NCBI GenBank assembly: GCA_037447605.1
Contig: CM074819.1
Coordinates: 1,634,297-1,698,296 of the forward strand
Source: Zygnema circumcarinatum SAG 698-1b
Taxonomy: Eukaryota > Plantae > Zygnematophyceae
Length of the DNA: 64,000 bases
Direction: 5' to 3'
The notes beneath the pieces were generated by a model. It was not told where the DNA came from. It was given only the letters and a program-made list of their open reading frames with translations, and did not search any database. The position numbers and the translations under genes are program-made. Below, piece by piece: positions 18,636-32,593 of this stretch. The stretch's first letter is position 1; each line of letters starts with the position of its first letter.

Positions 18636-21600
18636 TCACACACATTTGCTAGTCGTTGGAACGCAGACGGAGGCCATGGCCTTGTCACGTGCCCGGAGGG
18701 TTCGCAGAAGCTTCGCAGTGCACTGCGTTCCCACCATCTTCTTGAACGTCTCCTTCTTGGAATAGCACCCCTTCAAACTGAGGCAGGTATGGCCCGGCTG
18801 TAGGGTGAAACTTCTCCCTTTGCAGCCCTTCGCCAAGCTCAAATCTGTAGCTTCAAGGCACACCTGCAGGGCAACGTCGAGAAGATGGACAGCAGCAGTC
18901 GGATGAAGAATGTTTCATTTTGAAAAAACGTGTGAAAAATACTTGCAGGTGATTTTCAGTAGCATGAAATGCATCCTCTTTGAACGCAACAGAAACATAA
19001 CTGACATTGACAACCGTTTCCAGGAGGCATCATCAAATAATCAACATTCTAAAAAGAGTTCAGTTTAAACACTCGAAGGGAAATGTGATTTTTTCAGACA
19101 TTCTCTCCTCGAGAGAGCTGCAAACTTCAAGGTTGTGCCAACGACAACCCACAAAAGCTCACAAAAATTTGGACCTCCTCCCTCACAGATGCAAAGGTCG
19201 CATTATTACCTGTCGACTGAGATCGCTGTTGGGATTGAAAGATAGCTGCAACTGTCCGCAGTACAAACCCGGGTTTAACGTGAAAAACTTCATAGCATCA
19301 CCCTCCATAAACCCCGTTATTATGGAAGCACACGTGTCATTCAGCTGCACGCTATACAGCTGAGTGCAGGGCCCCGGGTAGGTGAGCTCTCCCCTCTGAA
19401 TGCAGACCTGCATAGGACCGTACACCTTGGAAGCAATCAGATTCGTCATTATGGAGGTGTGAACTGACTGCAGTTAAAGTGCTTCTTTTGAACGAAGCAT
19501 ATCACATAATCTGCCTGAGGGAGAGAGCAAGAAAGAGGGAACATTTCGAAGAGGAAAGTGAAGGTTTGCCTGCTGATATGGCTGCAGTTGTGAGCAGTCC
19601 AATTCTGGATTAGGAGAGGTGGGCCCGGATAGGGCTGTGATGTTAAACAATTGCTCCACGGAGGTACACGTGTCTCCCTACATCCACCACAAACAAAAGG
19701 CGTACTTTTGGAATAATCTCACTATGCTCATTATAAGAGTATTGGTTCATGACGAATTAGGAAGACCCTTGCTTTCTTATGTGGCTGTAAGGAAAGCAGT
19801 CTGCATATCTTGCACGTCTTTTTTGATTACCGCGTGCTGCTACCACTGACTGACTAACACTGACCTCCTCCAGTGCATATGTGACGGAGCAGTTGCTCGC
19901 ACTTGTCACATTCACCACCGTCCCTCCCGGAAGAGGTCTGCTGCAATTCAGACCCTGCAATGCAGGGGGACAAAACCAACAGGGAAGTTGGTTTGATGTC
20001 ACCTTTGTGGTAAGACATCTCTCTCTCTCTCTCTCTCTCTCTCTCTCTCTCTCTCTCTCTCTCTCTCTCTCTCTCTCTCTCTCTCTCTCTCTCTCTCTCT
20101 CTCTCTCTCTCTCTCTCTCTCTCTCTCTCTCTCTCTCTCTCTCTCTCTCTCTCTCTCTCTCTCTCTCTCTCTCTTTCTCTCGCTCTCTCTCTCTCTTTCT
20201 CTCTCTCTCTCTCCCTCTCCAACAAGACAGCAGCGTTTTGCAGGCAAAAGTTGCTCGAAATGGAACATGCTTTGGCTTCTATTACTTCCCAGCAAGTTTC
20301 GTTAGCAGCAAGTCCTTGGATTGACCTTGTTTTGTGCTGTGAAAGCAGCCTTGGGGATGCCATATATTCCGTACAGACTTGCGCAGGGCAAAGTGGTATT
20401 CACTGGGACAGTGTAGTTCAATAGCCGTCCTCCTAGAACAACAGCTGCAATGAAAAGCAGAGACTATAGATTCAGCCAATTAGACATTCAGCACTGCTAT
20501 GCATCCCAATCAGTTTAACAAAAAGTTACAATCTTGTATTGGTAAAGCTCCGAATAAACATTCAGTTATTGTTTGAAGAAATAGGCACTCAACGCCTTGA
20601 AGTTTAAAAGAGGGAGAGAGAGAGAGAGAGGGAGAGAGAGAGAGAGAGAGAGAGAGAGAGAGAGAGAGAGAGAGAGCTGGTGCGGACCGGGGAGGCAGGT
20701 GAGAGCCTCTTCGGACGAGTCCGGCGAATAGCCGAGAGGGCATATACACATGTACGTTCCGTTGAGCGTTCCGTTGTCCACGCATGTGCCCACGCCGCAT
20801 GGATTCCGTGATGTGAACGTACATGGAGACGCTGCCTCATTGCAATCAGGGGTAAAGCATTACTACATCAAGCAGCAACTCAAAAGGAGAGAAGAAAAAC
20901 GATGAAAGTAACCTAAAATGAACAGAAAAAGAAAGATCACTTCAACTTGGAATACTGTGTTCGTGTTCCTTGACTTGGAGATTCAGCTGCATGAGGATAC
21001 ATGCAGGGTTTATCTTCCAGCAGATAAGTCGGATAAGTCCCTAGTCTATATGCGAAAACATGAATTAAACGAAGAGTGTTTCTTACCGGGTGCACATGTC
21101 TGCGTTCCGTCAGAGTTGGTCACATTCACAAAATTTTCAGCACATTCGCACAAGTTTGTTGTTCCTGATGGAATGCAGACCCCATTTCCGCAGGGGTTCA
21201 TTTGACCCGGTCCGTAAGAATTCGGCGAGTGAAGCTCAAGTCATTGCAGGGATCGTTTGCTGCTAAACAAATAGGAAGGAAGGAAATTAAGTAGAGAATA
21301 AGTTGCTTGCTTGCTTTGGTGATCGAGTGGTAATGCTTTCTTCCAAGTTTTCAGGTCACAGAAAGAAGTTCAGAACCCTTATTGCCACGATTCTACTTTT
21401 TTGTATGGTCGGAGAACTTTGTCAACACAAAATTTCGACTTGAAATTACACTGCGCGGCATGTCTGTACAAACGGTTATAAGTATTATGGCTACCTTCTA
21501 GTAGATAGAGTGCTGAAGGCTAACTGCAGTGAAATAAAGCATTTCATCTTTTTTTTTTTTCATTTTTTTTTTTTTCTACCTGGAGGTTGAACGATAGGTA

Positions 21601-30600: not shown

Positions 30601-32593
30601 GGCAGCCCCACTTCTCTAAAAGCTGCATTGATTTTTGCACTTCCACATACGAGAAAAAAAACTTACAAGTTTTGCAGATTCACAAGGTTGCCGATAGTAT
30701 CCGGGATAGAGCCCGATAGGGAATTATAATGCAAGAATCTGAAGAAAAGAAGGAAGATTGCCGCAAAAAGAAGCTCATGTGAAAAGTACGCTGAGTGAAT
30801 GACGAGGAACGGAGTCGAGCAACAAGGATCAAGTGTGTACTTGTGAGAATTATCTAGGGTGGCATTGTGAGAAGGGCCAAAAGTAATACTGAGCGAAAGG
30901 TTAAGAGTGGTGTTGTGAAAAGGGAGAGAGAGAGAGAGAGAGAGAGAGAGAGAGTGTTACAGAGACGAGAGAGATTGAGAAAGAAAGGTAGAGGGATGAG
31001 GAATAGCGAGGAAATGATGTAGTGACAAGGGTTCAGGGTCATAGGGCAGAAGATGTGGGAGAAGGTAAAGGGAAAGAGACGTGAGAGACTTGCTGTCGTG
31101 AAGCGAAACTGAGCGGGAAGTGAGAGACCCACTCTCTCTGATTGTAGGGGTTTGGGTTTTGGGAATCAAAGGGAGAAAATTGGGTAAGACAAAGGTGCAT
31201 GGGAATGTTTGTGTGATGTTTTGCTCTTGATGCGATTCTCTGAGTATCGAATTTCATCATACATGAACTAGCTTGCGATTCTTTACATAAAAAAAAGAAA
31301 GATGCATATATGCGTAGAAATCAACTTTCTCTGAAAGCTGCATGGTTCAGTGCTGTTACTTATTTAGTACACCACCAACATCTGAGCCCTCCTATCACCG
31401 TGAAGTCGCAAACACGCATGTAACACATAATGCCTATGTAATGGAGCCACTCACAAATTTATCAACTTTGTCAGGTCACCGATGGCAGGTGAAATGGTTC
31501 CTCCAAATCCGTTGCCACCAAGAGATCTGCACATGGCAGGTTACCAGTGAGAGCACCAGAAAAAAGGGGCCGGGGTAAAAGGTTTTTTTTCCTCTGCTCC
31601 TCTGCTCCGGGCGGCCCTTTACAGCCCGCTTACTGAGAAGGATTCTTCACGCAGAACTCTCCCGCCTCTCTCTCTCTCTCTCTCTCTCTCTCTCTCTCTC
31701 TCTCTCTCTCTCTCTCTCTCTCTCTCTCTCTCTCTCTCTCTCTCTCTCTCTCTCTCTCTCTCTCTCTCTCTCTCTCTCTCTCTCTCTCTCTCTCTCTCTC
31801 TCTCTCTCTCTCTCTCTCTCTCTCTCTCTCTCTCTCTCTCTCTCTCTCTCTCTCTCTCTCTCTCTCTCTCTCTCTCTCTCTCTCTCTCTCTCTCTCTCTC
31901 TCTCTCTCTCTCTCTCTCTCTCTCTCTCTCTCTCTCTCTCTCTCTCTCTCTCTCTCTCTCTCTCTCTCTCTCTCTCTCTCTCTCTCTCTCTCTCTCTCTC
32001 TCTCTCTCTCTCTCTCTCTCTCTCTCTCGCTCTCTCCCCCTCTCGCTCTCTCTCAGCCTCGGCTGCATCTCTAAAGCTATCGAATCCGTGGAGCCCTCCA
32101 AAATGACAAGCGGAATTCAGTCCAAAGTGTTGTAGCTCACAGCTGCGTGACGCGACCGTTTCCGTCGCATGTGATCCCCGCCCAGAAGCTGCAGTCGCTG
32201 CTGCTCGCCGTCCAGGAGGTGAGCCGTGACCCGTCGGAGAATGCCGCCTTGACAGCGAGAAGAGCATCCCCTGCGACCCAAACGCGAGCAGATGCAGGAT
32301 TGAGGCCCACATTAGTTTAAAATTTCACGGAGGGAGAAATAAAGGAATTCTGCTTCTCCCCTTCCGTGGAGGCTTCCTTCCCAGAGAACACATTGTTCCT
32401 TTGCTTGTTTTCCACAAGGCCCAGGCGCAGTCCGGCCCTGGCCGGCGGCGGGGCAGAGGGCGGGCGGGCGGGCCTCACTGTCTCGCGGGTCCATGGCCTG
32501 CGCGGCGGCTTGGCGCGGGGCGGAGGCGGAGATGGCGAGAAGCAGAGCGAGGAGGAGGGCGACCGCGCGAGGGCGAGAGCGCGCGGCCGCCAT
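18636..32593 (-). CDS. Gene A: secreted mosaic SP-LRRNT-LRRs-Cys/EGF-extensin-LRRNT-LRRs-Cys/EGF-papain C1A-EGF-EGF-LysM x3-4 (~1500 aa; one apparent frameshift)
   Basis: Phase-compatible exons: 32479-32593 (signal peptide); 32141-32270 (LRRNT); 72-nt LRR exons at 31455, 30667, 30347, 30097, 29883, 29534, 29165; 28179-28534 (LRR end + Cys/EGF); 26473-27147 (SPPP-rich); 26174-26306 (LRRNT2); 72-nt LRRs at ~25809, 25526, 25045, 24724, 24298; 23585-23946; papain exons 22922-23107, 22459-22691, 22095-22235, 21580-21799 ([28 protein letters not shown]); EGF exons 21087-21262 and 20688-20831; LysM-like exons ~20325-20432, ~19865-19953, 19570-19677, 19210-19407, 18636-18863. That all exons form one transcript is inferred from phase compatibility and the absence of another signal exon. 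Confidence 0.8.
20018..20215. repeat. (CT)n microsatellite (intronic)
   Basis: ~200 bp CT run. Confidence 0.95.
21922..22024. repeat. (GA)n microsatellite (intronic)
   Basis: ~100 bp GA run. Confidence 0.95.
27227..27875. mobile_element. Degenerate Tc1/mariner-MITE pieces in a gene A intron
   Basis: GGTGGAAAATATGAGGACCCCC..TGTA end at ~27507-27535 and GGTGGAAAATATTAGGGGG..TGTA at ~27848-27875. Internal TACGA repeats resemble 16838-17174. Confidence 0.6.
27893..27978. repeat. Interstitial telomere-like repeat (CCCTAAAA/CCCTAAAAA)
   Basis: About 9 tandem units. Confidence 0.8.
29058..29117. repeat. Interstitial telomere-like repeat (TTTTTAGGG)x6
   Basis: Perfect 9-mer tandem units. Confidence 0.85.
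29534..30738 (-). repeat. LRR exon-intron cassette array of gene A (5 units)
   Basis: 72-nt exons [99 protein letters not shown], with mutually homologous introns. Confidence 0.92.
31665..32030. repeat. Long (CT)n microsatellite (~365 bp, intronic)
   Basis: Uninterrupted CT run. Confidence 0.95.

Follow-up and report, generated by a model that had tools for sequence, protein, structure and literature searches.

The locus at 32593-18636 (minus strand) of the window analysed here, a 64,000-nucleotide stretch of DNA from Zygnema circumcarinatum (a green alga near the land plants), raises the question of whether one gene can place LRR blocks, a proline-rich stalk, a papain-type (C1A) protease, EGF units, and LysM-like repeats in a single secreted chain, and what purpose such a protein would serve. 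The locus is a genuine gene of 29 exons, and its splicing is supported by transcript contigs in the protease-EGF region. As a whole, it is best explained (at a probability of roughly 0.55) as a member of an expanded family with a constant body and variable heads, represented in this strain by a derived allele that lacks its tail.

Gene model and module order

Exon phases are consistent across the 22 exons preceding a frame break in exon 23 and across the six following it, and introns are GT-AG throughout, with the exception of one GC-AG intron (donor after 19570). Pfam, BLASTP, and fold analyses were performed exon by exon, or on the sequences of relatives; exons were joined in silico solely to determine length, stop position, catalytic residues, and hydropathy. 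The resulting module order is signal peptide, LRR-EGF, Pro-rich stalk, LRR-EGF, C1A, two EGF units, and four LysM-like modules, distributed as follows.

32479..32593, minus: exon 1, with the initiation codon and a segment resembling a signal peptide
32141..32270, minus: exon 2, LRRNT_2 cap, LRR block 1 (Pfam E 3.3e-9)
29165..31526, minus: exons 3-9, LRR exons of block 1 (exons 3-6 at 31526-31455, 30738-30667, 30418-30347, and 30168-30097; exons 7-9 at 29954-29883, 29605-29534, and 29236-29165)
28179..28534, minus: exon 10, final LRR, Cys-rich cap, and EGF-like unit 1
26473..27147, minus: exon 11, Ser/Pro-rich stalk, including six 45-nt repeats
26174..26306, minus: exon 12, LRRNT_2 cap, LRR block 2 (Pfam E 3.1e-10)
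24299..25880, minus: exons 13-17, LRR exons of block 2 (25880-25809, 25597-25526, 25116-25045, 24794-24723, and 24370-24299)
23585..23946, minus: exon 18, final LRR, Cys-rich cap, and EGF-like unit 2
22922..23107, minus: exon 19, pre-protease linker of ~45 aa (conserved in the family), then the start of mature C1A; oxyanion Gln937 at 22934-22932
22459..22691, minus: exon 20, Peptidase_C1 (E 7.6e-8); catalytic Cys943 at 22686-22684
22095..22235, minus: exon 21, central part of C1A (family profile E 2e-15)
21580..21799, minus: exon 22, Peptidase_C1 (E 3.2e-17), alignment to cathepsin K; catalytic His1080 at 21757-21755 and Asn1100 at 21697-21695
21087..21259, minus: exon 23, 173 nt, EGF-like unit 3; reading frame shifted in this strain
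21215..21216, minus: site at which 10 nt present in the in-frame allele of sample X5 are deleted (depth 22/22 in X5)
20688..20831, minus: exon 24, EGF unit 4 (Pfam EGF E 1.4e-7), out of frame in this strain
18636..20444, minus: exons 25-29, four Cys-framed LysM-like modules, out of frame in this strain (20444-20326, 19954-19865, 19677-19570 with the GC donor, 19407-19210, and 18863-18636)

The first-pass annotation had proposed a secreted design with a signal peptide and neither transmembrane helix nor kinase, and the hydropathy check agrees: residues 7-31 form the sole hydrophobic stretch of the joined model and resemble a signal peptide, no transmembrane helix was found beyond them, and the 29-exon model contains no kinase exon. 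With hydrophobicity limited to the signal peptide, the transmembrane helix or GPI anchor of receptor-like kinases and proteins is missing. The two LRR blocks also stand as described. Both LRRNT_2 caps exceed the Pfam cut-off, and the 72-nt phase-2 LRR exons number seven in block 1 and five in block 2, five of the seven in block 1 being copies of a ~335-bp cassette type common to an upstream paralog (43861-35870). Each block ends in a Cys-rich cap and an EGF-like unit (36% identity between the two), the EGF-like units falling below the Pfam cut-off for EGF_2.

The stalk that separates the blocks has the length and SPPP character first reported (225 aa, 139 Pro, 12 SP3+ runs), but its proposed anchoring in the wall as an extensin is unsupported: it contains no Tyr and no YxY or VYK motifs, and a cross-linking extensin is therefore ruled out. 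Like LRX proteins, the window protein has a signal peptide, an N-terminal LRR and Cys-rich region, and a Ser-Pro-rich region. The extensin regions of LRX proteins are C-terminal and cross-link through Tyr (PMC13705520), whereas the Tyr-free stalk is internal and followed by a second LRR block and the protease.

The protease domain was correctly recognized as C1A with an intact catalytic set (Q937, C943, H1080, and N1100), and Peptidase_C1 was matched at 33 bits in exon 20 and 64 bits in exon 22, against a cut-off of 20.7. Fold, catalytic set, and secretion are held in common with plant C1A enzymes (papain, actinidin, RD21, Rcr3/Pip1). Unlike these, the window protease has no I29 prodomain (no Pfam match in exons 18-19), carries Ser in place of Gly23, and is flanked by large N- and C-terminal binding modules, where plant C1A enzymes have a granulin domain or none. 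Nor is I29 among the Pfam domains listed for any family relative retrieved. Position 23 is occupied by Gly, Ala, Ser, or Asn across the family, and the Gly23 substitution is a family trait. The papain fold is known from the AlphaFold model of a relative, P0053, rather than from the window protein; in Foldseek, this model matched procerain-B and actinidin (E 2e-16, TM 0.8 by target).

A frame break after the protease

The claim that all modules lie in one chain does not hold for this sequence, the first-pass annotation having missed a frame break in exon 23. Of the two AGs in its NAGNAG, the second serves as acceptor; the exon lies out of frame, and the chain terminates at 1158 aa, just after the protease, with a TGA at 21200-21198 (minus strand). 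In X5, a DNA run, 10 extra bases behind 21215 keep the frame open, giving 1494 aa. These bases are missing in X1 (also a DNA run), X8, and X20 (an RNA-like run with spliced contigs), the contigs of which agree with the window, gap-free, across the 21215 site. The break is thus genuine in this strain and not an assembly error, and it is absent in X5. Since X5 is in frame and this strain is not, the full mosaic is an allele of another sample of the same species. The two Cys motifs flanking the break lie in a single frame in relatives, which, together with the in-frame X5 allele, identifies the deletion as the derived state. The allele of this strain is accordingly LysM-less or null: a derived variant that has lost either its function or its tail, of the kind that a birth-and-death recognition family is expected to produce.

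Transcripts use the acceptor at 21259. Rescue through another acceptor was rejected: the only AG that opens the downstream frame, before 21234, needs a phase-0 donor. Skipping of exon 23, which would keep the frame (phase 1 to 1), left no joint in the contigs, an assembly form that drops rare variants. The joint between exons 23 and 24 (21087-20831) was found in X8 and X20, and the exon 21-22 splice is present in both as loose ends. The frameshifted transcript was readily assembled in X20; the premature stop of such a transcript should trigger nonsense-mediated decay.

Beyond the break, exons 25-29 maintain an open frame up to a TGA at 18638-18636. The two EGF repeats first reported are partly upheld, since EGF exceeds the cut-off in exon 24 but lies out of frame in this strain. 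The same applies to the three to four LysM-like repeats, which are out of frame and for which no single window exon gave a Pfam LysM match, but which align in order with a family region bearing Pfam LysM in 12 of 14 relatives (and in 9 of 17 in a second comparison). ESM features place LysM first (0.88, a lead only), and the tail of the P0053 AlphaFold model folds into four beta-alpha-alpha-beta units; exon 29 folded with 16 relatives reached a low-confidence pLDDT of 50, with no significant fold match (Z <=2.2). By these Pfam and fold results, the LysM-like modules of the window copy are divergent.

Relatives and known systems

A profile search matched exons 19-29 to the family profile in order, and exon BLASTP agrees; by sequence, the window gene is assigned to a zygnematophyte LRR-EGF-C1A-EGF2-LysM4 family. 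Its architecture is therefore not unique, and the unusual combination first claimed proves to be one more member of a family already present in public gene models, in a copy that is truncated in this strain. The LRR-EGF-C1A-EGF2-LysM order occurs on single chains in P0014, P0053, P0054, P0082, P0086, and P0089, three of which (P0014, P0053, and P0082) are transcript-derived (EukProt Trinity). The body is found in gene models of Mesotaenium (ME000065S09001, ME000166S01720) and Closterium (CLOM_g10019, CLOM_g7740) as well as in EukProt transcriptomes; the family is multi-member in both genera, and Spirogloea has a version without LRR (SM000144S00689). Module order, the conserved pre-protease linker, the absence of I29, the catalytic motifs, and the Cys-framed LysM repeats are alike in the window copy and its zygnematophyte relatives, with exon identities of ~30-66%. 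The window copy differs in its frameshift after the protease, in the second LRR-EGF unit and 225-aa Pro-rich stalk added in front, and, relative to many Closterium members, in having no legume-lectin insert. While the body is common among the relatives retrieved, none has a double LRR-EGF head and stalk ahead of the protease.

The LRR-cap-EGF unit is also the ectodomain of algal receptor-like kinases (Mesotaenium ME000395S06755 and ME000369S06449), and it precedes a kinase in P0046, P0012, P0009, P0034, P0052, and P0006. The window protein has a protease and LysM tail where these have a transmembrane helix and kinase. In Chlamydomonas reinhardtii, C1A is combined with 2-3 LysM, sometimes with EGF or other lectin domains (PMC6362431, Suppl. 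Table 3), fusions described as not retained in vascular plants (PMC6362431, Van Holle and Van Damme 2019). These entries list no LRR or Pro-rich stalk, are likened here by description, and were not among the relatives retrieved for the family. In the ESM Atlas, the protease-to-LysM part of a relative matched ordinary C1A clusters only, below 0.8. No paper describing an LRR-papain-LysM family was found in the literature searched; LysM, LRR, and zygnematophytes go unmentioned in a survey of the papain family (PMC10380794), and the main text of the Zygnema genome paper mentions neither LysM nor papain.

Proposed function and alternatives

LysM normally binds GlcNAc polymers of microbes. As predicted from sequence, the protein would most likely act in defence, as a secreted protease directed by glycan and ligand recognition, within a family that evolves by birth and death. 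The constant body comprises LRR-EGF, a short linker, C1A, EGF2, and LysM4, behind variable heads, the head in the window being a second LRR-EGF unit atop a Pro-rich rod. The product of an intact allele would be secreted into the wall or mucilage, with the hydroxyproline-type rod as a possible spacer. Its LysMs could bind the GlcNAc glycans of fungi, chytrids, or bacteria (chitin or peptidoglycan); its LRR-EGF units, which algal receptor kinases also use as their ectodomain, could confer selectivity for target proteins or inhibitors; and proteolysis would be local. Because the allele is frameshifted after the protease, the LysM targeting proposed here and in the first-pass annotation cannot apply in this strain; the in-frame and frameshifted alleles within one species form a natural pair for studying what the LysM tail does. 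It is also possible, if tentative, that an I29-less papain and a LysM tail were joined to LRR-EGF ectodomains of receptor-kinase type and to exchangeable heads (lectin or LRR). The resulting repertoire would evolve as resistance genes do, through expansion of exon cassettes, shuffling of heads, and segregating null or tail-less alleles such as the one described here, and would have disappeared in land plants, in which LRR receptors are partners separate from papain-like proteases.

A role in wall remodelling or mating is unlikely. The protease would then act on glycoproteins of the alga's own wall or mucilage as cells divide, filaments adhere, or conjugation takes place, with LRR and LysM recognizing self glycoproteins or partner cells. 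The family does occur in conjugating algae, the allele differs between samples, and one of the lectin-peptidase fusions of algae is the M11 peptidase with which Chlamydomonas degrades its wall (PMC6362431). The variety of heads and the null alleles, however, suit an arms race better than housekeeping, and the usual ligands of LysM are microbial GlcNAc polymers.

By analogy with Cf-2, a transmembrane receptor-like protein that senses Avr2 via the papain-like Rcr3 (PMC5814044), the protein might instead serve as bait, trapping microbial protease inhibitors in its protease domain. The fused LRRs would then retain the trapped complex or offer it to a distinct membrane receptor, as in a fused Rcr3/Cf-2 pair, and proteolysis would be secondary. 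Ser at the catalytic Cys position in P0054, P0064, P0065, P0081, and P0097 and the LRR-EGF unit common to algal receptor kinases would suit such a decoy. This appears improbable given that the window protein and most relatives keep their catalytic residues, the window protein is without a transmembrane segment or signalling domain, and no partner receptor is known.

There is only a slim chance that two genes were merged, an LRX-like LRR-EGF-stalk (exons 1-11) and an LRR-protease (exons 12-29). The head recurs in the upstream paralog at 43861-35870, which has a stop inside its Pro-rich exon and no protease thereafter; the Logan proteins P0002 and P0078 are LRR-EGF-Pro-rich with no protease within their sequences; and the 5' junctions 28179-27147, 26473-26306, and 23585-23107 are predicted. 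Exon 11 of the window gene, however, is stop-free and ends in a phase-1 GT donor; a 166-nt GT-AG intron separates it from exon 12, which starts in phase 1 and, in the model, lacks a separate signal peptide. A long gene that slips by one frame is a typical sign of long-read error; an artefactual frameshift is nevertheless very improbable here, given the gap-free contigs and a difference of 10 nt confined to another sample.

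Gene model and domain composition

The gene was modelled as follows:

32593 (ATG) to 18638-18636 (TGA), minus strand: gene model of 29 exons

Its introns are GT-AG throughout, with a GC donor after 19570 as the single exception. The encoded chain begins with a hydrophobic, signal-like N-terminus, followed by a first LRR block (LRRNT plus seven 72-nt LRR exons) that closes with a Cys-rich cap and an EGF-like unit. A Ser/Pro stalk of 225 aa separates this block from another one (LRRNT plus five LRR exons), whose own cap-EGF unit shares 36% identity with that of the first block. 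A linker of ~45 aa leads into the C1A protease (catalytic set Q937, C943, H1080, and N1100), downstream of which lie two EGF units and then four LysM-like repeats framed by Cys. Searched exon by exon, Pfam recognised two LRRNT_2 domains, two exons matching Peptidase_C1, and an EGF domain in exon 24, and a hydropathy check revealed no transmembrane helix in the joined model. The signal-like N-terminus, paired LRR-EGF blocks, stalk, intact Gln/Cys/His/Asn motifs, and lack of a transmembrane helix described in the first-pass annotation are thus all borne out. Database searches and folds used single exons or stored relatives as queries; joined exons were used solely for the length count, the positions of stop and catalytic residues, and the hydropathy check.

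A frame break in exon 23 and its alleles

Exon lengths total 4475 nt, which is not divisible by three. Within exon 23 (21259-21087; EGF-like unit 3), the frame switches between the start of the exon and its remainder, and a TGA at 21200-21198 terminates the chain at 1158 aa, ~20 residues past the protease. In the gene model, the single-chain mosaic proposed earlier would hold through the protease, and its EGF2-LysM tail is cut off by this previously overlooked break. Because relatives read the two Cys motifs flanking the break in the same single frame, the tail belongs to the gene. A premature stop far ahead of the next junction, with more introns after it, generally exposes a message to decay; here the stop precedes the following exon junction by 111 nt, six introns are still to come, and decay is accordingly expected. 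Exon 23 runs from phase 1 to phase 1, such that skipping it would bypass the frameshift; the corresponding joint (21580 / 20831) was absent from contigs of the runs compared.

Four public sequencing runs were compared with window positions 20680-21915. An assembly slip as the cause of the break was largely ruled out by a contig of X1, a DNA run and possible assembly source, which covered 21082-21634 with zero differences from the window. In X20, an RNA-like run, exon 22 (catalytic His/Asn) is joined without a gap to exon 23, whose acceptor is the second AG in a NAGNAG motif, and exon 23 is joined in the same way to exon 24 (EGF unit 4); the frameshifted form is therefore transcribed and spliced. 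The 21087-20831 joint is also present in run X8, and both X8 and X20 contain a loose end matching exon 21. The locus is thus a genuine gene, spliced at the exon joints examined in the protease-EGF region.

A further DNA run, X5, comes from another sample and another study labelled as the same species. Its contig has an additional 10 bases behind 21215, supported at full depth (22/22; one contig, one run), the remaining sequence being identical across 553 nt, intron included. With these bases, the frame is intact at this site and stays open to 1494 aa. From this one contig of one run, the species thus has the full mosaic as a real allele, whereas the strain sequenced here has a derived deletion.

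Near-identical paralog copies (~90-97%) of exons 24 and 22 (20688-20836 and 21582-21637) were also found in the DNA runs, where some reach ~3x single-copy depth, as well as in X8/X20. The genome therefore contains recently duplicated protease-EGF bodies at other sites, and these look transcribed.

Relatives, known systems, and proposed function

A profile search with the cap-EGF exons retrieved 52 proteins among 1.8 billion representatives. One of these, P0014 (a 1468-aa EukProt transcript), has the complete LRR-EGF-C1A-EGF2-LysM order, and the set also includes several LRR-EGF receptor kinases, two of them from Mesotaenium. Using P0014 or a 14-member alignment as query, we recovered many family members in Closterium, frequently with a legume-lectin insert, two in Mesotaenium (ME000065S09001, ME000166S01720), one without LRR in Spirogloea (SM000144S00689), and others in EukProt transcriptomes and one Logan contig. 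Beyond the family, only ordinary C1A proteins were returned, with no land-plant match in these searches, whose reach depends on length and on shared words. Window exons 19-29 aligned collinearly with the family profile, weakly so for both the first and the last exon of the tail. Exon identities reached at most ~66% against annotated proteins from Closterium, Mesotaenium, Spirogloea, and EukProt, which indicates a further zygnematophyte as the source. Pfam LysM matched 12 of the 14 aligned relatives, and the AlphaFold model of relative P0053 combines a papain fold with a tail of four beta-alpha-alpha-beta units at moderate confidence. In the window itself, single exons gave no Pfam LysM match, and the model of exon 29 had low confidence (pLDDT 50), its fold matches not exceeding Z 2.2. 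The LRR-EGF-C1A-EGF2-LysM body, a combination not known from any characterised land-plant protein, was already deposited in Closterium, Mesotaenium, and EukProt proteins. None of the retrieved relatives has the double LRR-EGF head and Pro-rich stalk before the protease, making the head the distinguishing feature of this copy; the gene adds a new type of head to an algal family that has been deposited but not characterised.

By domain and catalytic residues the protease belongs to the C1A peptidases. Canonical plant C1A subfamilies carry an I29 prodomain, which is listed for no family member, placing the family outside them. The papain Gly23 position varies across the family. In five members (P0054, P0064, P0065, P0081, P0097), Ser replaces the catalytic Cys; judging by this residue, they are likely inactive or silicatein-like variants. 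Another, P0068 (Closterium Yama58-4, 1555 aa), has two C1A domains plus LysM repeats and may be a fused gene model. C1A+LysM fusions have previously been listed for Chlamydomonas, with the remark that vascular plants did not retain them (PMC6362431); we found no paper on an LRR-bearing zygnematophyte C1A-LysM family. The gene is neither a receptor kinase nor an LRX. Tyr cross-linking, described for LRX proteins (PMC13705520), is unlikely here because the 225-aa rod contains no Tyr by residue count, which argues against the extensin-type wall tethering first suggested.

The analysis shows a secretion signal with no anchor, an intact set of active-site residues, a module order conserved across the family, and a polymorphic allele. 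We propose (probability roughly 0.55) that the in-frame protein is a secreted, LysM-docked, LRR-EGF-targeted, locally cutting protease. It would be released into the wall or mucilage, where the LysMs may dock on microbial GlcNAc polymers and the LRR-EGF units, held out on the Pro-rich rod, could select targets for local cleavage; the conserved linker may stand in for the missing propeptide. A protease of wall remodelling or mating is an unlikely alternative. By analogy with Rcr3/Cf-2 (PMC5814044), the protein might instead be a fused bait for microbial inhibitors, which we regard as improbable. Least probable of these alternatives are two separate genes.

Head paralog and window neighbourhood

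Further features of the window are:

43861-35870, minus strand: tandem paralog limited to the head, with signal peptide, LRRNT, LRR exons, cap-EGF exon, and Pro-rich exon
27890-27980 (intron 10) and 29058-29117 (intron 9): interstitial repeats of telomere-like type, with units of 8-9 nt that end in AGGG when read on the minus strand
~46200-50230, minus strand: multi-exon, multicopper oxidase-like gene (ascorbate oxidase/laccase type) with His-rich motifs
55930-60265 and 61383-62782, minus strand: U-box/ARM E3 ligase-like gene
5711-8635, plus strand: 974-aa long ORF, Pro-rich, with a C-terminal RING-like Cys pattern
12560-14683, minus strand: 707-aa long ORF, acidic, with heptad-like repeats

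The head paralog is ~70-76% identical to the head of the gene at the DNA level, contains 14 cassette LRR exons (72 nt, in ~335-bp units) versus 5 in the gene, and ends at a stop in the Pro-rich exon near 35870, with no protease found downstream. Given this tandem head-only copy, the head is a mobile, recently duplicated unit. Besides its telomere-like repeats, intron 10 contains an element that resembles stretches near 16670-17060 and 33100-33400 and is probably a small mobile element. In the 5' region of the E3 ligase-like gene (~59800-61200), identical ORFs occur again ~1.58 kb further, adjoining short N gaps, possibly reflecting an assembly duplication.
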